Below are positions 2,686 through 53,868 of a stretch of DNA of 64,000 nt, one piece after another (positions within the stretch are counted from its first letter, which is position 1; each line of letters opens with the position of its first letter). The stretch comes from Zygnema circumcarinatum SAG 698-1b (Eukaryota; Plantae; Zygnematophyceae). The position numbers were made by a program, and so were the translations under genes. Below the pieces are notes generated by a model. The model had not been told where the DNA came from. It ran no database searches and saw only the letters and a program-made list of their open reading frames with translations. Where the stretch lies: contig CM074806.1 in assembly GCA_037447605.1 (NCBI GenBank), forward strand, positions 4,526,001-4,590,000. Direction: 5' to 3'.

Positions 2686-3308
2686 AGGAAGAGTTTTCAG
2701 ATTTCAGAAAAACATTCTAAGAGGGCGTACGGTTATGCCGTACGGTCCGCAACTTTCCGAGTAAACGTCCGTCAAGCCTGCGCCCCCGAGCCTACCCGTG
2801 ATCGTGACGTGACGTGACGTGACCGTACGCCGCGTTTTCAGGGTTCGAAATCCGCCCGCGCGCACTCGAATTTGGGACCGCCCTCCCTCCATTCGTGGTC
2901 CGGTTCAATTTTACTTTCAACATACGCCAATTACGAGTCGCCACGTTTGCGAAACAGATCCAGAGTGCCACGTGTCTGGTTCCCATTGGGTTATTTCTAA
3001 AAATAAAAATTATAGTGAAAGCCCGTCCTCCTTAGAAATCCGTCAGACATTGAACTGCGGTCTATGTTTCTGAGTACAGTAAAAAAGTTTGTACGGAGGT
3101 ACTTGCGGGGTTTTAGGTGACGGAGTAGCGGTCAGTTATTGGACCGGTGGAACTGACCGTTGAACTGCTGCGCAGTTTACGTGTGAGCAGCTGCACACGT
3201 CACTGGGACGCGTGCTGACGTGAAGGTCGGAGTGGAGTGCCAGGTGGCGCGAGCTCGTGAAGCCAAGTGTGTTTGCGCTGCCACGTGGCAGCTGGACAGC
3301 GGCATCAA

Positions 3309-5881
3309 ATGTACGGCGGTGGTAAGCGGCCGTCCTCCCTGGTACCGTCAGGGTTTAGGGTTTAACGTCCTCAACCTTTCGGCAAGGCATTTCGGTGGAA
3401 GGCCTTAGGGTTCAGCAGCTAGAAGTAGGAATAGGGACAGGGTTAGGGTTAGGGTTAAGCATTGAGCTCAGGCCCTAGTTAGGGATCCAGCAAACTGCGA
3501 GATGATGGGCAGAAAAAGTCTGAATTTAGGGCATAGTGTGTGAAGCGTCGGGGTCGGCATTGGGTGCCGAGGTTTAGGGTTTACGGTTTAGGGTTCAGCC
3601 CTTGGCTGGGTCAGCACGCTGATGCGCACTCACCCATGCAAACTGGCATGGCCCATGCATGCATGCCCCCTTCTCGGCATGCCTCTTTCCACTGACGACT
3701 CATCCCAATGTCATCCCATCCCATGCATGCCACGCCGCGGCATTCTGTGGTGTGCCATGCCATGCCATACTATACCCTAACATGCTATGTATGTAGGCCA
3801 TTCTATGCCATTCCATGCATACATGGGGGGGGGGGGGGGGCATGGGAGCCTTGCACAAGCCTACATTTATCCTTTAATCAACTCCACATGACATGGTGCA
3901 AAGTGCATGGCATGACATTGCATGGCATGGCATGCAAGGCCCAGTGCCATGCCATGCCATGCCATGCCATGCCATGCATGCATGCATGCCAGAGTCTGAG
4001 CGAGCACGGGTCCCATGCAGACGAGGTCTCCGCCCTCGTGCTCGACCTCGGCTCGCACTGCTGCCGGCGGGCGGCATGCGGGGAGTGACGTGCCTGCTGC
4101 GGTCTTTCCCCTTCAGTCAGCGCCTCCCTCCCTCCTCCCTCCCTCCCCCTCTCCCTCCCTCCCTCCCTCCCTCCCTCTCCCTCCCTCCCTCCCTCTCCCT
4201 CCCTCCCTCCCTCCCTCTCCCTCCCTCCCTCCCTCCTCCCTCCCTCCCTCCCACTTACGTTGCTATACACATACAATGTCGGCTTTTAGGGTGTCATCTC
4301 GTCTTGTCTCTTGGCTTGTCATTCGGTTCTCCATTTCTCTCTCTTCCCTTCCTTCCTTTCTCTCTCTCTCTCTCTCTCTCTCCCCCTCTCTCCCTCCCTC
4401 CTCACTCGCCCATGAAGCCCAATGTTGGTCGGCGCATGAGCGAAGGTTGTGGGAGCCATCGCCGGCACGGCGGAGGACGATACGGAGAACGGAGAGGGCG
4501 GACGGAAACGGAAGCTCTATGTGGGAGTCAACGCACTCGGCTACCGGCGGGACCACATGGAGGTACCGGGGGTGGGTGGTTAAGGGTCAGGGCTAGGTTC
4601 AGGGGGACGAGGGTAGGGTTTAGGGTTTACGGTTTAAGCGAAAGCATTGAGAGTTTAGTGTTTCTGGAAGGACGGAACGCTGTATATATAATTGTCGACA
4701 CATGGACGTGTTAAAATCTTATCTAACCCTACCTTTCTCCTCCTTCCTCCCTCCCCCGTCTCTCTCTCTCTCTCTCCCCCTTCCTCTCTCTATCCCTCTA
4801 CCTCCTCCGCTATATCCCCCTCTCCCTCTCTCTCTCCGTCTCTCACTCTCCCTTCCATTCTCGCCCTCGCCCTCTCCCCTCTCTCTCTCTCTCCTTCTCT
4901 CCCTCCTAGCGGTGTGCAGGTGGTGCCCTCAGTGCAGGACGGGCTTCTTAGCAACTGGGAGGCGGTGGAAGCCATTTGGGACCACGCCCTCAGGTTCAGA
5001 ATTTCACTTCAGGCCCGTTACTATGCAGCCAAAAAAAAAAAAAAACTAAAAAAATAGTAAAGAATCTTTGCAAATTCTTTAGGAAAATGATTTTCATTTT
5101 TTGTGTGTTTTTGGGCTGCCCAGAGACCGATTATTGGTGGACCCACGGGAACATCCCATGCTTCTTGCAGAGCCCTCCTTGCCACTGCACCTTCTTCGGT
5201 GTNNNNNNNNNNNNNNNNNNNNNNNNNNNNNNNNNNNNNNNNNNNNNNNNNNNNNNNNNNNNNNNNNNNNNNNNNNNNNNNNNNNNNNNNNNNNNNNNNN
5301 NNTNNNNNNNNNNNNNNNNNNNNNNNNNNNAATTTTTTATATGATTTTCCCAATGCAGGTTTTGACATCTTTTGCTTCTGGGCGGGCGGCCTCTCTCGTC
5401 GTCGATAGGTGAGCTCATAGCATTCGAGGGGGAAGGGATTGTGAATACGAGAAAAAATGATTATGGGGGAAAGGAAGTAAAGAAAGAGAGAAAAAAATAA
5501 AACAAGGAAGCGGAAGCACTTTCATTTCACATCTCCTCGAAGAAAAAAATTAAAATCGTTTTGGGGTGTGGTTACATTTCGAAAATTCAGCGGAGGAGGT
5601 TCAACTACAGTGGCTGCTGTAAGCGATGGCTATGTCCTGCAAAAGGTGATTATTTTTTTACCTTTTGCTATATTTTCTAAAGTTGTATTCTTGCTGTGTT
5701 TTGTTATTATCAATCTTTAAATATAAATATTGCTAAAAATAGTAATAAAGATTATGTATTTTTATGAAAAATAAATTTGCACATTGGGCTGAATTTGCAG
5801 TCCATTGTGCGCTCACCGATCGGCGGAGACTTTCTCACTGAGTGCATGTTCCACTGCCTCCAAAACCGAGGAATCAAGGTG

Positions 5882-27707: not shown

Positions 27708-30700
27708 CTAACTTTCAACCGTCCGTTTCACAAGTATGAACTCGCCAAGGAACTTCTTAGGAGAGGCTCCCTCCTGCCCTTCCTCCCTCCATGACTGCCC
27801 CACAATCACTCCAGGACCCGCCGCTCTCACATAGTCTCGCATGCCTTCATTGAAGGGCCATAGAGGCCATCCTGCATGCAATCATATACATAGAATAAGT
27901 CAGAGAAATAAGAGGGATTCAGGGTTAAAGATTTGATAGGATTCAGGGGCCTCAAGCTTTTAGAGTTCCAATTTTATCAGGATTTAATCAAAAGAATCAT
28001 AAATCAAGCCTCCAGAATCTGGAAGGCCAAGTGAGAGCTCTGCTTACTGGGCGTAGGGAAGTGCAGGGGGACTCCGAGGTCGTTCAAATGAAGCTGCCCT
28101 TCTTCGTATGCAAAGGAGGCGTCACAGAGCTCCCCTGTGCTCTTAACGCGCTGCGCCGACTGAACTTTAAAGTACAGCGGAGCCACAATGTCGGCAACTC
28201 CTTTTAACAGGGGACCGCCTGAAAACAGGCAAGTCAAAGGCAGGATTGCAAAGCTTTAAAAAAATTCAATAACTGCCCCACAAGGGAAACGAAGAAGAAG
28301 GGGAAGAAGGGGAAGGAGGGAAGGGCGGAAAGGGGAATGGAACTGAAAACAACTTAAGCCCAAAGAACGAGAGTCTAAGTACCATGATGAATCGTGCTAT
28401 TCATAGAGAGCAAGATAAGACGGGTTTCTGTCATTGGGATTTGATTTCGACACTTTATTTCGGTCTGAATTTGGGACGAAGAGGTGGGCCCTATTATTAT
28501 TGGAAAGATGGGCCCAAGGAAGCATGTCACGCTAACGTACCTGAAATGACTCTTCCATAGAGCTCGCCGTCGGTCCCGAGAAAGAACGCCTGTGCTGCAC
28601 CGACCAAACATTACGAGAAAATGAAAGAAAGAAGATTCGCTGAAGTTGTGAATGTGGGGGCGCAGACTGTCATGCTGTTCTTCTTCTCTCCCTCTCGCGC
28701 CCTCTCCCGTGCACATTCTTCCCTGTCTCCCTCTTCCCCTCCCTCCCTCCCCCACTCTCTTGCTCTGTCCATTCTTTCTCCCCTCCTCTCTCCCTCCCTC
28801 CCTTGCTGCCTCCCTCCATCTCCCTGTCTCCTACTTTGTCTGCCTCTCTCCCTCTCCCAGTCTTGCTCTCCCATCTTCTCCCTCGCGATCATACCTGTTG
28901 GAATCGGCTCAACCACTCAAACTGCCAGTTCACTGTCTCCGCCCAAAACGTTCGTTACCCGTTGTAAGGAAATAGGGATTAGGAAAACAAATGGGTGAAA
29001 TGCACAGCTTTGGAAAACTAGACGAAACAAAATTCGAACAGACTAATCAACCAAACGCGTACCACTTCATTGCATTAACTTCATGAAAGTTTTCGCGTTA
29101 TAGCCCATAGAGCAATATAACAAGCGTTAAACCCACTGAAGAAAAACCCTAAAAGTTCACTTCATCACTTCATCTTCCTTACGAGATGATTACTTGTACT
29201 GAAGTGATGGGGGCAGCAGGTTTGAGCATCGGAGCACATACATCCGATGACCCGACCATCCCATACGTCGGCCTCCAAAGGCTTGGCAGTGCCGCCACGT
29301 GGCAGCATCTCATAGGCTCCCTCCCCGAACTCGCCTGCCAGATAGCGGTCGCCAGCCACCGTCCATAGCTTTGCTATGTGCCTGCCATGCAATTGCACAG
29401 GAAAACTCAAAGACTTTTAACGGGGGAGAGAGAGGGAGAGGGAGAGGGAGAGGGAGAGGGAGAGGGAGAGGGAGAGGGAGAGGAGAGGAGAGGGAGAGGA
29501 GAGGGAGAGGGAGAGGGAGAGGGAGAGGGAGAGGGAGAGGGAGAGGAGAGGGAGAGGGAGAGGAGAGGGAGAGGGAGAGGGAGAGGGAGAGGAGAGGGAG
29601 AGGGAGAGAGGGAGGGAGAGGGAGAGGAGAGGAGAGGGAGAGGAGAGGAGAGGGAGAGGAGAGGGAGAGGGAGGAGGGAGAGGGAGAGGAGAGGGAGAGG
29701 GAGAGGGAGAGAGGGAGAGGGAGGAGGGAGAGGAGAGGGAGAGGGAGAGGGAGAGGAGAGGGAGAGGGAGAGGGAGAGGGAGAGGGAGAGGGAGAGGGAG
29801 AGGGAGAGGGAGAGGGAGAGGGAGAGGAGAGAGGGAGGGAGAGGGAGGTGGGAGAGGGAGAGGGAGAGGGAGAGGGAGAGGGAGAGGGAGAGGGAGAGGG
29901 AGAGGGAGAGGGAGAGGGAGAGGGAGAGGGAGAGGGAGAGGGAGAGGGAGAGGAGAGGGAGAGGGAGAGGGAGAGGGAGAGGGAGAGGAGAGGGAGTGGG
30001 AGAGGGAGAGGGAGAGGAGAGGGAGAGGGAGAGGAGAGGAGAGGAGAGTGGAGAGGGGAGAGGGAGAGGAGAGGGAGAGGAGAGGAGAGAGGGAGAGGAG
30101 AGGGAGAGGGAGAGGGAGAGGGAGAGGAGAGGGAGAGGGAGAGGGAGAGGGAGAGGGAGAGGGAGAGGAGTGGAGAGGGAGAGGAGAGGGAGAGGGAGAG
30201 GGAGGGAGAGGGAGGGAGAGGGAGAGGGAGAGGGAGAGGGAGAGCAGTAATGAAGGAAGTTATCAGTCATAAAAAAGACTCGGGAGGCACCTTGGAAGGA
30301 GAATGTCCAAAAGCCGATGGCGTCGGTCCTCGGGAATGTCACCTATCTTTTTCCTGGTGCAGGACGGCACAGAAAAAGGAAGTGAGAGAGAGGAAGATAG
30401 AGAGAGCCAGAGAGGGGGACCGAGAGCAAGGAAGAGAGAAATTTGGGGGGAGGAGGGGCAGGGGCAGAGACAGAGGGGGGGAAGGGGGGGAGGGAGGGGG
30501 TGAGTGAAGGGGGAGAGAGAGAGAGAGAGAGGAAGAGAGAGAGAGAGAGGAGAGAGAGAGAGACCACAAGTAGGCGGCTGCATTGTATCCTTGGGGGTCG
30601 AAGGGGCGGAGCACGCCGTAGCCATCCAGCAGCGCTGCCACGTGGAGCTCGTCCACGTACGCCTTGCGCCCCCCCACCAGGCGGTACGCGGCCTCCCCTT

Positions 30701-32121: not shown

Positions 32122-32127
32122 TATAAA
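32122..32127 (+). promoter_or_regulatory. TATA box of the SAMDC-ODC gene
   Basis: TATAAA upstream of a CT-rich 5'UTR exon that ends CTG|gtgagt (intron 32325-32836, tcgcag acceptor). Confidence 0.55.
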
Positions 32128-32861
32128 GCTAGGGTTTTGGTTGCAGAGAAGCCCCGCTTGCTCAGTGCTCTCTCTGCCGCTACCTTTCCCTCATTCTCTC
32201 TCACTTGCTCGCTCTCAGTCTTGGTCTTGGTGGTTTATATTGGTTTTGGTTTCGTTGAAGAGATTATTTTTTATTATTGGCGTTGGAAGGGCGGGTGGTT
32301 GGAACGCTCTCAAGGAATAGTCTGGTGAGTCCACGTGGGAGGGATAGGGAGGGAGAGGAAGGGTAGAGGGAAAGGGATGGTGCGGGAGACGGGAGGATGT
32401 GCGTGTGTTGGGAAGTAGGGGGAGGGGGTATTGGGAAGTTGAGCATGGTTGGTTGGTTTGGTTGGTTGGTTGGTGGGAGTGTGGGAGAGTCGAAGGCAGT
32501 TTGGATTGAAGGTAGAGTGTGTAGAAGAGGGACTATTTAGGAACCAAGGAAGGAAGAAGGGCACGATGAGAAGGGAAAACATGAGGGAGAGGGAGAGGTC
32601 AGTTTGGATGTGCTGATACGATAAAGTATGGGGAGGTATTCAACTGGAGAAGAGAGAAGCGATAATGAGAGGCTGGAAGGAAGGGAAAGAGGACAGACGG
32701 AGGCTTTCATATAGATTTCCTTGTGGAAGGGATGAAGGCTACAGGGGTGTGTTGAGAGATGTTGTAACCATGGTGAGCGGGCTTATAGATGATAAATGAT
32801 CGGAGAACTGACATGGGGTTGCTTCTGTTTTCGCAGAAATTGTTTTCTTTAAAATATCTGA

Positions 32862-32870
32862 ATGAAGTGA
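32862..32870 (+). promoter_or_regulatory. 'Tiny' uORF (ATG AAG TGA) overlapping the small uORF start by one base (TGATG)
   Basis: AATGAAGTGATGGAG; same architecture as land-plant SAMDC leaders. Confidence 0.85.
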
Positions 32871-33160
32871 TGGAGCCCAAGGATTCAAGTAATTGTTCCT
32901 TAATTAGTAAAAGTATTCAGCAATACGAGACGCCCTTAGGGTTTGTGGTGGAGGACGTGCGCCCTCGCGGAGGAGTCGATTTCTTCCGAACTGCTGCTTA
33001 CTCCAACGTCAGCTTCATCCCCCTCCCCTTTTTTTCCCTTCTTTTATCACCGCTTTCTTCTATGTCTTTTTTTGGCTTACTCCTTCCACGTATTTTATAT
33101 CTTGTTTGGCTCACATTTTCTCCTCTTTTCTGGATGCAGTGCGTGCGAAAGCCCTCCTGA
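32870..33160 (+). CDS. SAMDC conserved-peptide 'small' uORF, 52 aa, two exons
   Basis: 32870-33007 plus 33140-33160 (GT-AG intron) give MEPKDSSNCSLISKSIQQYETPLGFVVEDVRPRGGVDFFRTAAYSN|CVRKPS*, matching the plant consensus YEAPLGYxIEDVRPxGGIxKFRSAAYSNCxRKPS. Confidence 0.95.
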   Translation: MEPKDSSNCSLISKSIQQYETPLGFVVEDVRPRGGVDFFRTAAYSNVSFIPLPFFSLLLSPLSSMSFFGLLLPRILYLVWLTFSPLFWMQCVRKPS

Positions 33161-33354
33161 TATTTGCTGCGAGTGAACCCTCTTAACTAGGTTAGGGATA
33201 GACCATCTTTAGAAAAGCTGTCCTGCTTCCTCTCCTCTCTCTCTGCCCCCTTAGGCTTCACCAATTGTAGCTAAGAGGGTTTCTTTACAAGGTCAGGTCC
33301 GCACCTTCCCCCTCTCTTAGCAGATTGGTGGACTTCTCCAGTAGGCGTAGAATC

Positions 33355-36225
33355 ATGGGCGGACTTTTCCCCCCAGAGGAGAAGGCAGCCAAGGGTGCCG
33401 GAGAAGATGGAGCAGGAGGCTTGCCTGTAGGTGGTCTTCCCTGTCCGGGCTTTGAGGGTTTCGAAAAGAGGCTGGAGGTAGAGTTCTGGGAAGTAGAAGT
33501 GGGAGGGGCAGTTGAAGTGGGAGAGGCGGAGGAGGGGCTTGGGCTCCGCCGAATGAAGAGGGAGGCGTTGGATGAGATGCTCACGGCTGCTGCTTGCACC
33601 ATTGTGTCTCACCTTCCGAACGAATATTTTGACTCGTACGTCCTCTCTGAGAGCAGTCTGTTCGTGTACCCGAAGAGGGTGGTTATCAAGACTTGTGGAA
33701 CGACGAAGCTGCTGAATGCTATTCCAAACCTTCTGAAGGCGGCGGAGGCGGTGGGATATCTTCCCCGGAGATGCAAGTATACTCGTGGAACCTTCATGTT
33801 TCCGGCGGCTCAGCCGAGCCCTCACAATTCTTTCGAGGAGGAAGCGAAAATTTTGGAGAAGCATTTTGGAAACTTGGGAGCGGGTGGAAAGGCGTTCGTG
33901 CTGGGAGATGCTTTGAAGTTTCCCAACTGGCACGTGTACGTGGCGGATATGCAGGCTGCTTCTAAGAAGTGTCAGGAGAAGGAGAAGCCACTCTTCACGT
34001 TGGAGATGTGCATGACGGAACTGGACAGGAAGGTGGCGGGACAGTTTTATCAGGAAGCAGGTTTTCAGTCCTCTGCCGATTGCACAAAGGTGTCGGGAAT
34101 TGGAGAGCTTCTCCCGAAATCTCACATTGATGATTTCCTCTTTGAGCCATGTGGGTATTCGATGAACGGCATCGAGGAGAACGCGCATTCGACCATCCAC
34201 ATCACGCCCGAGGATGGGTTCAGTTACGCATCGTTTGAGACTATGGGATACGGAAATGGAGGAACGGATCTTGGCAAGTTGGTGAAGGATGTTGCTACGA
34301 CTTTCAAGCCGGGGAAATTTTCCATTGCTTTGCATACAAATGGAGAGGTGGGACCGGAGGGACCTGGTTCTTGGGGAGGGAAGCTCCCTGTCTTGGAGAA
34401 TTACATATGTGAGGGAACTTCTCGACAGGAGCTTCCTCTAGGAGCTGCGGTTGTTTTCCACACATTTAAGGAAGTACATGGAGCTTCCGATGTCGAGCAG
34501 GCGGTGGCTCCACTCCCTCTCTATCAAGACGTGGGTCTCTTGCAGAAATTCGGAAAGTCGGAGGTTAATTTGAAGGAGTGTGTACCTCAGTTCGATGTTC
34601 ATTCGCCTGTGCACGACTCGTACAAGAAGTTTGGAGCAGCCGCTGCAAATGCGATCGCTTCGATTGAGCCAGTGTTGGTGGGGGCTGGGGCCACTGACAT
34701 TGACAATTATATTTCGGCTGTTATTGCCGGAACGAAGGCTGAGGAGGCGTTTTATGTGATGGACCTTGGAGTCGTCATGCAGTTGTGGAAGCTCTGGACG
34801 GAATCTATGCCGAGAGTGAAACCGTTTTATGCTGTGAAGTGTAATCCGGATCCTGCCCTTCTCTCTGTTCTCGCATCTCTAGGAACTGGCTTCGATGTGG
34901 CGAGTAAGGCAGAGTTGGATGCAGTGTTGCAAGCCGGGGTCTCTTCCGACCGCATGATTTATGCGAATCCCTGCAAGTTACCTTCTCACATCCGCGCTGC
35001 AGCAGAGAAGCAGGTGACTTTGACCACTTTTGACTCAGAGTCGGAGCTCTTTAAGCTAAAGAAGTATCATCCAGGAGCTGAAGCGGTGCTTCGAATCAGG
35101 GCGGACGACAGGGAAGCTCGATGTCCTCTTGGAGTGAAGTATGGTGCAGAAATGGAAGACTGTGAGGACCTGCTTAAGCTTGCGAAGAAGCTCGGAGTTA
35201 AGGTGGTGGGAGTGGCCTTCCATGTTGGAAGTGGAGCCTCCAATGGAGCTGCCTTTGCAGACGGGATAGAAGCAGCCCGCGAAATCTTTAACATGGGAGT
35301 GAAGTTGGGCATGGAGAAGATGTCCCTTTTGGATATCGGTGGAGGATTCACATCGAAAGGAGGTCATGGAGTGGGCTTCAACGCTGCAGCATCTGCTATC
35401 AACGCGGCTCTTGATTTGCATTTCCCGGAGAAGATGGGAGTGAAGGTGATTGCAGAGCCTGGGCGATTTTTTGCAGAGGCCCCAGTGACTCTCGCCACGC
35501 ATGTGTTCGGATCAAGATTCAGAGGGAAGGGGATGGATCGGACATACGAGTACTGGATCAATGACGGTATATACGGGTCTATGAATTGCCTCCTCTACGA
35601 TCACGCACAGCTCTCTACGCGCCCCCTCGCATCTCCAGGAAAGCTGCGGGAATCGAATGGGAAGCCATGGGTTGGGGAGAAGCTCTACCAATCGACCATT
35701 TTTGGACCCACTTGCGATGGACTGGATACTGTGCTTCGTGACGCGTGGCTCCCTCAGCTTGATTGCGGGGATGTGCTGGTAAGTAGACTTTTCCTAAAAT
35801 ATTTTTGTAAACTCTTGTTCGTAGTTTCTTCTTTTTTGTTTTCGTCTGGGCCGTCTTTTATTTCTCATCTGGTTGTAGAGACATTTCCGGAATCTCAAAC
35901 ACTTCCGGTTTGGTGAGTGTAGGTGTTCCCTCGCATGGGTGCATATACGCAGGCGGCAGGATCTTCGTTCAACGGATTCAGTACTGCAGATATTGGCACG
36001 TTCTATGTGTATTCGACGGAACCTAGTGAGAGCAGTGAGCTGCTGCTCGAGGGCCTGCAGGGAGAGAACGATAATGACAGCAGCTCTGGGGGAGATGAGT
36101 CGCTGGTGGAATTGTCCGGAGCCTTCGGAAGGGAGGGCGAAGGCAGCGGAGACTCTTCCTCAGACTTTGGGGATGCTCCAATGGACCAAGGGTTCAGCAG
36201 CGGTAGCGACGATGACTCGTTTTGA
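33355..36225 (+). CDS. SAMDC-ODC: Bifunctional S-adenosylmethionine decarboxylase (N-term) - ornithine decarboxylase (C-term) fusion, ~908 aa, 2 exons
   Basis: Exon 33355-35778 (808 codons) plus 35923-36225. AdoMetDC motifs: GFEGFEKRLEV, YVLSE|SSLFV, KTCGTT, FEPCGYSMNG, TIHITPEDGFSYASFE. ODC motifs: AFYVMDLG, PFYAVKCNP, YANPCK, FHVGSG, LDIGGGF, AEPGRFFA, NDGIYGSMNCLLYDHA, FGPTCDGLD, DVL|VFPRMGAYT, SFNGF. Confidence 0.97.
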
Positions 36226-37762
36226 GTGAGAGGGTTTACCAGCGATAGCGATGATGAAACGTTTTTGAGGGCTCAGTAGGGGTAGAAGCGATGAAGGGTT
36301 GTGAGAGTGGGGATTTCAGAGAGCAGCAGTTAGCAGCGGTTGGAGGGGGTGGACTGTTGGCAGAGGCCATACAGTGGAGGGTGTGGGGGTAGTAGGTAGA
36401 TAGAGTACTGTGGGTGGGTGAGAGGGGGTAACAATGTACCCCTCAAAGCTCTCTAGCACTTGCGTTTTTCGGTTTTTTCTATTGTCCTTTGTTTTTGGTT
36501 TGGTGGGAAAAAAATTAAAATATATATGATTTTTGTTGGGTTCATTTTCTTCGTCTCAAATGGGCTGATAATTCGTGGCAATGAAAAGATCAGAAAAAAA
36601 TGTCTTTCTTATTAGTCCATTTTGAAAAGTTCTCAACTATGGATCGGAATTTATGAAGTCTGCTGAACCTGCTCACATTCAATACGGAGAGTCAGACTTT
36701 GATTACTGAAAAAAAATCAAGTAAGCCTGTACGGAGGGAAAATAGAACACTCGTCGATACGGCAATTTTGTGCCGCGAATTTAGGAGAGTAATTTAGTAA
36801 CCTAGTAATTTAGTAACCTCCTCTATCTCCGGGCAATGTCTGAACCCCTTTTTCCACCCCGCCACGCTCTCTTTTGTCGCCACGCGCGAGAGAGGAGAGG
36901 CGTTCGCAAGTGCGTGGCGCGCATGGCGACGAGGCGCGACACGATTTCTCATCGGCGGAGTGCTAAATTTGCAATTCAGCGTCCTCCAGAGGTCCTGCGC
37001 TTGGGCATGCTGAATCAGCTTAATTCGGGCCCTTTTTGGAGGAATTTTAGTAGTCCCGGTAATCACGGAACGGTACAGACAGGTTTGGGGGAGCCGCGGT
37101 TTCCAACACGAATTTTTCAATCGAAATGAGTGCCTTTTAGCATACTAAATTCGGGAATTTAGTACGTGATGGTCAAAGTCTGACTCCCCCTAACGGAAAA
37201 TAAAAAAAGGACATGAATGGAAAAATATCAAAGGAAAGGCCTGAATGGAAAAAAAAAAACACCAAGGGGAGTGAAGAGTGGGAAAACGAATGGCAGAAAA
37301 AGAAAGAGATAGAGATAGGTAAGACAAATTTCATATCACAAAAAGTAAAGCAACCTTTTGTTAATATAACATTATTTGCCCTAAAACTCGGGCAACCTTT
37401 CATTTGGGCCCTAATCCCAGTCCATAAATTACCACTTCAAAGCCTTATTCCAGGCGGCTCCTCCGTCTACCGCTCTGAGGAAAAGCGTCTAAAGCACACA
37501 AGAAAGGGAGATAACAACAAAAGCCCCCCCAAGTCTACAGCGTTCAGATGTACAAATCAGAAAAATCACTGACCCTAAACCCCTAAAACCTTCAACCCCT
37601 AAAACCCCTAAAAGCCCTAAAAGCCCTAACAAGCCACCATCATCCTCCGCACGCCACACTTTCCTCAACAACCACCACTCTCCACTTCCACCCTCAGCAC
37701 TCCGCTGAACCCTAAACCCCAAACCCTAATTTTCCCTCGCCTCCCCTCCCTTTACCGACTAA

Positions 37763-53868
<16,106 letters not shown>

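Follow-up and report, generated by a model that had tools for sequence, protein, structure and literature searches.

The closest described counterpart of the gene analysed here is the bifunctional enzyme of Plasmodium falciparum that joins S-adenosylmethionine decarboxylase to ornithine decarboxylase (AdoMetDC/ODC), in which a single open reading frame (ORF) encodes an AdoMetDC of the eukaryotic type at the N-terminus, followed by a hinge and, at the C-terminus, ODC. The Plasmodium enzyme is reported to be a dimer of fused polypeptides, and its AdoMetDC is not stimulated by putrescine (PMC3253432, reviewing Muller et al. 2000). The benefit proposed for this fusion is a balanced supply of putrescine and decarboxylated S-adenosylmethionine (dcSAM) rather than channelling (PMC3253432). 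The polypeptides of ~170 kDa carry large parasite-specific inserts and assemble into a ~330 kDa complex. A second point of reference is the stand-alone plant AdoMetDC (SAMDC; structure 1MHM), the transcript of which has leader introns and a pair of upstream ORFs (uORFs), one tiny and one small, that overlap by one base, the small uORF encoding 52 aa and ending in Pro-Ser (uORF mechanism, PMC2811004). Two polyamine enzymes in one chain are also known from bacteria, in the form of AdoMetDC-aminopropyltransferase fusions (PMC11107197), and among domain-architecture clusters we found actinobacterial combinations of ODC with AdoMet_dc (PF02675) and of ODC with spermidine synthase. In these bacterial fusions, the AdoMetDC is of the PF02675 family and not of the SAM_decarbox family (PF01536), and the partners or the domain order differ; they clearly represent independent events.

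The window considered here is a 64,000-nt stretch of the genome of the zygnematophycean alga Zygnema circumcarinatum SAG 698-1b (contig CM074806.1), and all features described below lie on its + strand. As in P. falciparum, a single ORF on a single mRNA encodes both domains, with AdoMetDC first, then the hinge, then ODC. At 908 aa and 97.3 kDa, by contrast, the algal protein aligns to the stand-alone enzymes with few gaps and without large inserts of the Plasmodium type, and its gene is instead preceded by a plant-type uORF leader. It shares with the stand-alone plant SAMDC genes the one-base overlap of the two uORFs, the 52-aa small uORF ending in Pro-Ser and the leader introns, but differs from them in that the main ORF runs on into ODC. 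Compared with other eukaryotic ODCs (Trypanosoma brucei 1F3T, human 1D7K), the active-site residues are kept, but the enzyme is tethered behind AdoMetDC.

The coding sequence comprises positions 33355-35778 and 35923-36225. The ATG nearest the start of the listed ORF (33325-35916) is at 33355, and the first stop-free run extends from there to 35913, across the AdoMetDC/ODC junction. The initial annotation had described the whole interval 33355-36225 as one uninterrupted frame; this holds as far as 35913, junction included, but the interval as a whole is broken by a 144-nt in-frame intron (35779..35922, GT..AG) containing a TGA at 35914 and a TAG at 35920. Contigs from all four RNA data sets aligned to the region (X1, X2, X4 and X7) lack this intron, and RNA depth within it is 52-336 compared with thousands in the exons. 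The main coding exon (33355..35778), delineated by the ORF, the Pfam matches and an RNA contig, encodes aa 1-808, that is, AdoMetDC, the linker and most of ODC, whereas the last coding exon (35923..36225) encodes aa 809-908 and the stop codon, including the stretch that completes the ODC sheet domain (VFPRMGAYT...FNGF) and, after it, an acidic tail. The 3' UTR extends to approximately 36569 (36226..36569), with the X1, X2 and X7 contigs reaching 166-169 nt past 36400.

Upstream of the main ORF, the four-exon mRNA has a leader of roughly 550 nt with the overlapping uORF pair. Leader exon 1 (32157..32324, start approximate) contains no ATG and is preceded by a TATAAA box at ~32123-32128; the X1 contig extends 167 nt 5' of its joint with exon 2. 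The first leader intron (32325..32836; GT..AG, the cut being ambiguous by one G) was recognized from the unaligned contig ends at 32836 in X1, X2 and X4, which match 32294-32323 and place these letters just 5' of the second exon; depth is low over 32700-32823 in three runs, and an X7 contig keeps the intron. The second leader intron (33008..33139; 132 nt, GT..AG) interrupts the small uORF, and its joint (33007>33140) is present in the X1, X2, X4 and X7 contigs. A single 3102-nt X2 contig covers 32836-33007 and 33140-35780 unbroken and therewith the uORF, AdoMetDC, linker and ODC. The earlier statement that no stop interrupts the junction was borne out by 2424 nt without a stop across the join, and RNA across the junction, which the initial annotation had proposed as a check, is provided by contigs from independent studies that span it with zero differing letters. 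This evidence consists of assembled contigs, not single long reads, and contig depth poorly reflects expression. The AdoMetDC-ODC fusion is a real gene on a single, highly expressed transcript.

The interdomain linker (aa 373-445; 34471..34689) measures ~73 aa, close to the ~80 aa first estimated, and is poorly conserved, apart from a short V-A-P-L-P-L motif behind the AdoMetDC domain that recurs among streptophytes. In an AlphaFold2 model, both enzyme domains are confidently folded and the linker is disordered, with pLDDT <50 at aa 393-414 and helices at 418-437; with a pTM of 0.53, the model does not give the relative placement of the two domains. In one X4 contig, position 34683 within the linker is joined to 255 foreign letters. 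An alternative first exon at this position was considered and set aside as unsupported, given that there is no AG acceptor at 34683, that the window does not contain the 255 letters and that the break occurs in only one of the four runs. The poor conservation and predicted disorder of the linker might be taken to mean that the fused mRNA yields two separate enzymes, through proteolysis of the linker or internal initiation; in addition, three of the four runs show greater contig depth across the ODC half, and one has the odd break at 34683. However, the points at which depth steps up vary by run, expression is poorly captured by contig depth, and no splice acceptor is present at 34683. Furthermore, the fusion persists across green lineages without drifting back to two genes, which argues that the covalent link matters, and the Plasmodium enzyme remains fused (PMC3253432). 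We thus consider it unlikely that the two enzymes are released from each other, and favour a polypeptide that stays fused.

The AdoMetDC domain (aa 32-372; 33448..34470) matches positions 3-343 of the 343-position SAM_decarbox profile (PF01536) with an E-value of 5e-107 and is hence a full-length member of the family. The best structure match is potato AdoMetDC (1MHM, E 3e-70), and the similarity to the human proenzyme is also high (E 1e-49). Alignment with the human and potato enzymes shows that the equivalents of human Glu8, Glu11, Cys82, Ser229 and His243 are present, together with the Y-V-L-S-E/S-S motif, in which the cleavage site falls between Glu99 and Ser100. The motif positions first reported are correct, with LSESS at aa 97-101 (Ser100 at 33652-33654), KTCG from aa 112, PCGYS from 265 and HITPE from 282, and the sizes first given for the predicted cleavage products agree with those that we computed (beta chain, 99 aa and 10.5 kDa; alpha-ODC chain, 809 aa and 86.8 kDa). 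Without exception, 31 fusions ranging from chlorophytes to ferns have E34, E37, S98-S101, C114, S269 and H282. Also invariant in these 31 fusions is Arg39, within an EKRLE motif, which aligns with potato Arg18, whereas Lys141 replaces potato Arg114. We take these two arginines of 1MHM to be the basic residues tied to putrescine independence in plant-type AdoMetDC. The presence of Arg39 suggests a plant-type enzyme that would not need putrescine, but Lys141 in place of Arg114 makes this independence uncertain.

The first part of the ODC domain (aa 446-808; 34690..35778) contains, in the same frame, matches to Orn_Arg_deC_N (aa 474-707, E 2e-75) and Orn_DAP_Arg_deC (E 2e-14). Over the whole fold, the ODC half matches the enzymes of T. 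brucei (1F3T, E 1.6e-92) and human (1D7K, E 1e-91). The features of the family (PF02784 and PF00278) are all in place, namely, the PLP lysine Lys495 (34837-34839), the glycine loop G662-664 and E701, R704, D737, C787 (35713-35715) and D788, the last five being the equivalents of Glu274, Arg277, Asp332 and Cys360/Asp361 of ODC; His623 is present as well. Here too, the motifs lie where they had initially been placed (YAVKCN at aa 492, NCLLYDH at 744 and GPTCD at 784, with Lys495 at 34837 and Cys787 at 35713). Retention of Asp737, the Asp332 equivalent, fits ornithine as the predicted substrate. The ODC catalytic residues are invariant or nearly so in the 31 fusions, and the C-terminal strands contributed by the spliced last exon (MGAYT and FNGF) are similarly preserved, MGAYT and FNG being nearly invariant. 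The domain lacks a C-terminal degron of the mammalian type and ends instead in a tail that is acidic and rich in Ser (aa 841-908; 36019-36222), with 19 D/E, 16 S/T and a single K/R (pI 4.05), a feature common to other streptophyte algae. Similar Ser/Asp-rich endings are found in Mesotaenium, Klebsormidium, Spirogloea and Marchantia, and the tail is missing in ferns, Selaginella and chlorophytes.

Dead paralogs that regulate active ones are known in polyamine metabolism (PMC6221367, PMC3663545), and one of the halves could in principle be such a dead regulatory domain, akin to the trypanosomatid prozyme or the antizyme inhibitor, leaving the protein with a single activity; the stand-alone copies that many green species carry beside the fusion could then provide the missing one. 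Known dead paralogs, however, have lost the very residues that are present here and conserved in the 31 fusions, both in AdoMetDC (Glu34, Glu37, Ser100, Cys114, Ser269, His282) and in ODC (Lys495, His623, Glu701, Arg704, Asp737, Cys787, Asp788), so that we regard a dead half as distinctly improbable. Because the fusion is carried by a single transcript and all catalytic residues are kept in both halves, reading the protein as bifunctional, with the predicted autoprocessing products, appears reasonable.

The leading AUG of the spliced leader opens the tiny uORF ATGAAGTGA (M-K-stop; 32862..32870), identified by reading and translating the sequence, the last base of which is the A of the ATG of the small uORF. 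The latter (32870..33160, spliced as 32870-33007 + 33140-33160 in four runs) encodes a 52-aa peptide ending in CVRKPS-stop that matches the Pfam family AdoMetDC_leader (PF08132, E 5.6e-15). The same peptide is encoded 5' of the Klebsormidium fusion and 5' of the Marchantia fusion, where the uORF has its intron at the identical position, and it has been absorbed into the gene models of Chlorokybus and Closterium. The conserved-peptide uORF pair of plant SAMDC thus precedes an AdoMetDC-ODC fusion gene.

The domain-architecture search suggested in the initial annotation revealed that the fusion is widespread, which removes its novelty and leaves the fusion itself standing. In a database protein search, all 120 of the best 120 matches listed had the three-domain Pfam architecture, the closest being 64-66% identical to the window protein. 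Among these best 120 matches are algae, including Mesotaenium, Spirogloea, Closterium, Klebsormidium, Chlorokybus, Mesostigma and many chlorophytes, as well as the land plants Marchantia, Riccia, Calypogeia, Selaginella, Adiantum and Ceratopteris. In all, the fusion was found in liverworts, one lycophyte, ferns, many chlorophytes and every streptophyte algal class sampled apart from Chara; those MMETSP matches that could be named are all from prasinophytes. The Marchantia polymorpha ‘S-adenosylmethionine decarboxylase’ (P0010), Selaginella LOC9650684 (P0012) and the Klebsormidium nitens ‘ornithine decarboxylase-like’ protein (P0013) carry automatic names and are orthologous fusions, with the same Pfam order, 53-56% full-length identity, the same catalytic residues and the same uORF peptide; the Marchantia coding sequence is intron-less, whereas that in the window has one intron near its 3' end. 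Mis-modelled entries also occur in the family, with uORFs merged into coding sequences, truncated Closterium ‘ODC’ models nearly identical to fusions and tandem ODCs in a frog and a mayfly. Outside the green lineage, AdoMetDC-then-ODC fusions were detected in a gene model (P0384) of the glaucophyte Cyanophora, in the CRuMs flagellate Diphylleia, in a rhizarian (Leptophrys) and in two apicomplexans, Selenidium and Cardiosporidium.

Separate trees of the AdoMetDC and ODC halves both follow the species tree, with the window gene grouping with those of the Zygnematophyceae Mesotaenium, Netrium and Spirogloea, which points to a vertically inherited copy of the fusion. Judging from these trees, the fusion is at least as old as Viridiplantae. 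In trees rooted by non-green fusions or at the midpoint, in which fusions are the only non-green AdoMetDC sequences and Selenidium and Cardiosporidium represent the apicomplexans, the stand-alone land-plant SAMDCs nest within the fusion clade, and constraining them to one clade was rejected (AU p 7.6e-6). In both trees, the fusions of Selenidium and Cardiosporidium sit on long branches outside the green clade; with these two apicomplexans sampled, the green and apicomplexan fusions may share an origin or may have arisen separately.

The initial annotation had held that the two enzymes are encoded by separate genes in land plants and had inferred an independent fusion in a streptophyte alga. 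Such an origin, in the present alga or its nearest relatives, would agree with the stand-alone SAMDCs of seed plants and mosses, with the stand-alone ODCs of seed plants, Sphagnum and lycophytes, and with a review of Plasmodium polyamine metabolism that calls the fused form a unique arrangement (PMC3253432). Neither claim survives the comparison: orthologous fusions of the same order are present in liverworts, the lycophyte Selaginella and ferns as well as in streptophyte algae and many chlorophytes, both halves track the species tree, and the uORF and its intron position are common to Marchantia, making an independent origin highly improbable. That adjacent genes were merged here through an error of the assembly or of the gene model, as might be supposed from the mis-modelled family entries, is a negligible prospect in view of the stop-free junction, the identical RNA contigs crossing it and the Marchantia ortholog, which is one intron-less 2580-nt ORF on a chromosome-scale contig. 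The gene in the window is a further ortholog of a family already deposited under automatic names and not a new invention of this alga.

In all likelihood, an ancient gene for AdoMetDC and ODC in one polypeptide is represented at this locus by its zygnematophycean ortholog, which would operate as follows. By homology, the proenzyme would cleave itself between Glu99 and Ser100 into the 10.5-kDa beta chain and the 86.8-kDa chain, the latter with an N-terminal pyruvoyl group serving as the AdoMetDC cofactor and a C-terminal part acting as a PLP-dependent ODC. Because ODC is an obligate dimer, arranged head to tail and with active sites shared between the subunits, two processed fusions would most likely pair to form the complex, in line with what is reported for Plasmodium. 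A single translation event would deliver the putrescine- and dcSAM-making enzymes at a fixed 1:1 ratio, and the products of both are substrates of spermidine synthase. When polyamines are high, the uORF pair would, again by homology, repress translation of both enzymes. Plants are not known to have antizyme, and the fusion would stand in for it as a feedback on ODC. In other eukaryotes, ODC is under antizyme control (PMC2811004).

We came across no account of an AdoMetDC-ODC fusion in the green lineage in the open-access full-text literature, a scope beyond which, in subscription papers, an earlier description is possible; a review of polyamines in microalgae names SAMDC-aminopropyltransferase fusions only (PMC6356823). 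A single locus changes little, adding one more ortholog, and the main interest lies in the family as a whole. On a broader scenario, our judgement is evenly divided: both enzymes of Viridiplantae would originally have been encoded by the uORF-controlled fusion, possibly older still, the stand-alone SAMDC (and perhaps ODC) of land plants would have emerged from it by repeated fission or truncation, and the enzyme of Plasmodium would be a remnant of an architecture common among eukaryotes rather than an innovation of the parasite. Should the fusion prove ancestral, the SAMDC genes known from plant textbooks would, together with their uORF switch, go back to a bifunctional gene. As predicted from the leader, the fusion would put ODC under polyamine-responsive translational control, and Marchantia, with its intron-less ortholog, offers a tractable system in which to address the purpose of the covalent link, a question that is hard to approach in Plasmodium.

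The AdoMetDC-ODC gene is real and occupies the plus strand. The six-frame ORF list contains an 863-codon ORF at 33325-35916, with its first ATG at 33355, and a single translation carries three Pfam domains, SAM_decarbox (aa 32-372, profile positions 3-343 of 343, E 5e-107), Orn_Arg_deC_N (aa 474-707, E 2e-75) and Orn_DAP_Arg_deC (E 2e-14). Scripted motif location placed the motifs of the initial annotation exactly where they had been read, namely LSESS with Ser100 at 33652, YAVKCN with Lys495 at 34837, GPTCD with Cys787 at 35713, and KTCG, PCGYS, HITPE and NCLLYDH. The junction between the domains is open, as had been claimed, since no stop interrupts 33355-35913. The description of 33355-36225 as one uninterrupted frame fails for the full span, which contains in-frame TGA (35914) and TAG (35920) stops, but the rest of the anatomy is accurate. 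Both stops lie within a 144-nt GT..AG coding intron (35779-35922, plus strand), the removal of which fuses ...GDVL to VFPRMGAYT..., a conserved sequence that completes the ODC fold, and yields a mature protein of 908 aa (computed mass 97.3 kDa). Very long purine-rich microsatellites, (GGGAGA) x141, (GA) x637 and (AG) x432, lie on either side of the gene (29422-30244, 42488-43757 and 46227-47086), together with shorter GA/GGGA and C-rich arrays (38683-39832 and 47733-49991).

The region is present in seven of ten public runs of one organism, and contigs from four different studies were aligned to 32700-36400. Two canonical joints, 33007>33140 (132 nt skipped) and 35778>35923 (144 nt skipped), recur in the contigs of all four studies. 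Contig depth is 52-336 in the second of these introns versus thousands in the exons, which identifies the contigs as assembled RNA from a gene with strong expression. A 3102-nt contig from data set X2 covers 32836-33007 and 33140-35780 with zero differing letters, so that one contig runs from the leader through AdoMetDC and the linker into ODC. In a contig from data set X4, 255 foreign letters, absent from the window, are attached to 34683, within the linker. There is no AG acceptor at 34683, and the foreign letters were seen in one run of the four. In three runs the ODC half has a greater contig depth than the AdoMetDC half. The join is probably an assembly chimera or noise, an ODC-only transcript being less likely.

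Upstream contig letters in three runs match 32294-32323, which places a first leader exon at roughly 32157-32324 on the plus strand, downstream of a TATAAA box, and a first leader intron of about 512 nt at 32325-32836. The first AUG of the spliced leader opens a tiny uORF, ATGAAGTGA (32862-32870, plus strand), the last A of which is the first base of a small uORF of 52 codons (32870-33007 and 33140-33160, plus strand) encoding a peptide that matches Pfam AdoMetDC_leader (PF08132, E 5.6e-15). Beyond this pair, the spliced leader contains no further ATG before 33355. The layout is that of land-plant SAMDC genes (PMC2811004). A contig from data set X7 reads unbroken through the first leader intron, representing either a retained-intron isoform or pre-mRNA, and an additional upstream ATG lies inside this intron at 32789. 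The small-uORF peptide is also found by tblastn upstream of the Marchantia fusion (74% identity, E 1e-15), where it is split after ...AAYSN, with the ...CVRKPS end about 220 nt further on; the intron position is identical to that in the window. In Klebsormidium, an 80-aa ‘gene’ with PF08132, called directly upstream of the fusion, contains the peptide, and the protein models of Chlorokybus and Closterium have the leader peptide merged into them. Judging from these sequences, the unit of uORF and fusion is older than the split of the lineages leading to Zygnema, Marchantia, Klebsormidium, Chlorokybus and Closterium, because the leader peptide lies upstream of, or is merged into, the orthologs.

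Potato AdoMetDC (1MHM, E 3e-70) and the human proenzyme (E 1e-49) both align with the AdoMetDC half, in which Glu34, Glu37, Ser100, Cys114, Ser269 and His282 correspond to human Glu8, Glu11, Ser68, Cys82, Ser229 and His243. Arg39 occupies the position of potato Arg18, which in the potato enzyme substitutes for the putrescine activator, and Lys141 that of potato Arg114. The ODC half matches the Trypanosoma brucei and human enzymes at about E 1e-92. When 31 fusions spanning chlorophytes to ferns are aligned, the AdoMetDC residues named above, as well as Lys495, His623, Gly662-664, Glu701, Arg704, Asp737, Cys787, Asp788 and the MGAYT and FNG motifs, are invariant or at least 90% conserved, whereas conservation is poor in the linker (373-445) and in the tail (841-908). 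An AlphaFold2 model based on this alignment (mean pLDDT 82.6) scores mostly 80-97 per 10-residue block in both domains, with a few lower loops, and below 50 at 393-414; with a pTM of 0.53, it does not fix the mutual orientation of the two domains. The 68-aa tail (36019-36222) is acidic and Ser-rich (19 D/E, 16 S/T, 1 K/R) and ends in ...SGSDDDSF. Similar ends occur in Mesotaenium (...SGSDDDNF), Klebsormidium (...SGSDDDAYY), Spirogloea, Netrium and Marchantia, and the tail is missing from ferns, Selaginella and chlorophytes; it could be a phospho-regulated element or a turnover signal.

The 808-aa exon product retrieved 2338 matches. In the best 120, PF01536 and PF02784 are always present and PF00278 is missing from a single one. 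The fusions include those of the Zygnematophyceae Mesotaenium endlicherianum (63% identity), Spirogloea and Closterium, the streptophyte algae Klebsormidium, Chlorokybus and Mesostigma, and the chlorophytes Trebouxia, Micractinium, Nannochloris, Coccomyxa, Bryopsis, Cymbomonas, Tetraselmis and Nephroselmis; the MMETSP entries that could be named are all prasinophytes, and one EukProt entry is Netrium. Fusions are also present in the liverworts Marchantia, Riccia and Calypogeia, in Selaginella and in the ferns Adiantum and Ceratopteris, so that the premise of separate genes in land plants is wrong for liverworts, lycophytes and ferns. AdoMetDC precedes ODC in 32 of 32 named fusions, with linkers of about 55-165 aa. 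An exhaustive HMMER search of 1.84 billion cluster representatives returned 1918 proteins at E<=1e-30, and about 53 of the best 150 are fusions of uniform domain order. Gene structure varies: in Marchantia the orthologous ORF of 2580 nt (AP031342.1, positions 3001-5580 of the extracted locus) has no intron, versus one coding intron in the window, and the Klebsormidium gene spans 4.3 kb for 864 aa.

Each half was excised and placed in maximum-likelihood trees with stand-alone SAMDCs and ODCs. Two careful AdoMetDC trees (55 and 85 rows, the latter with non-green fusions as outgroup) were built. Chlorophyte fusions are followed by those of Mesostigma and Chlorokybus, the Klebsormidium fusion with a stand-alone Chara SAMDC, a Zygnematophyceae fusion clade (99/95), in which the window sequence lies beside two unnamed transcriptomes, Mesotaenium and Netrium, and finally an embryophyte clade (100/99) mixing liverwort, Selaginella and fern fusions with stand-alone moss, lycophyte, fern and seed-plant SAMDCs. 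In the 85-row tree, the land-plant stand-alone SAMDCs fall deep within the fusions; forcing ten named ones, a group chosen after the tree was seen, to be monophyletic against streptophyte fusions lowers the log-likelihood by 81.8 units (AU p 7.6e-6). The careful 60-row ODC tree has the same species-tree order; in it, the streptophyte fusion clade has as its sister a group of stand-alone enzymes (Klebsormidium, Sphagnum, lycophytes, seed plants), both inside the wider green fusion set; in a quick 150-row tree, seed-plant ODCs lie within the green clade at an unresolved position. The independent algal fusion initially proposed is refuted by this widespread architecture and by the species-tree order of both halves. 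Truncated models of fusion genes evidently account for some ‘stand-alone’ entries, such as the Closterium ODCs, which are almost identical to Closterium fusions; the argument from the trees relies on the moss, seed-plant and lycophyte entries. Another possible cause for stand-alone and fused copies grouping by lineage is gene conversion between paralogs.

Outside the green lineage, Pfam-confirmed fusions of the same order were found among lower-scoring HMMER representatives in five named organisms (P0384, P0381, P0436, P0437 and P0474): the glaucophyte Cyanophora paradoxa (P0384, a genome model), Diphylleia rotans (CRuMs) and Leptophrys vorax (Rhizaria), both from transcriptomes, and the apicomplexans Selenidium serpulae and Cardiosporidium cionae. 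This fused architecture, described as unique to plasmodia in a review of protozoa (PMC3253432), is thus not confined to Plasmodium and Viridiplantae. The non-green fusions lie outside the green clade in both trees, several on long branches, and the overall distribution is compatible with a very old fusion followed by many fissions or, alternatively, with several fusions or transfers. The sequences of the two predators could conceivably come from prey, but neither is close to that of any green alga in the sampling. Among ESM Atlas clusters, Actinomycetota join ODC domains to bacterial-type AdoMet_dc (PF02675) or to spermidine synthase, fusions that are analogous to that in the window but independent. 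Two animal entries, P0377 (Gastrophryne) and P0382 (Ephemera), contain two tandem ODC units and are probably merged models of tandem duplicates.

The locus produces one mRNA, which carries a conserved uORF pair and a single ORF; the catalytic residues of both halves are intact. By analogy with the enzyme families, self-cleavage at Glu99|Ser100 would yield chains of 10.5 and 86.8 kDa, the ODC part would mediate dimerisation, the two enzymes feeding spermidine synthase would be produced in equimolar amounts, and the uORFs would subject both to polyamine-dependent translational repression. The Plasmodium fusion provides an experimental precedent; it is reported to be a dimer of fused chains with a putrescine-insensitive AdoMetDC, and its benefit is proposed to lie in balanced output, not in channelling (PMC3253432). 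We found no description of green-lineage AdoMetDC-ODC fusions in the open-access full-text literature, and a review of microalgal polyamines does not mention them; the family may be under-reported. Taken alone, the locus is unremarkable; what merits specialist attention is the evolutionary and regulatory picture.
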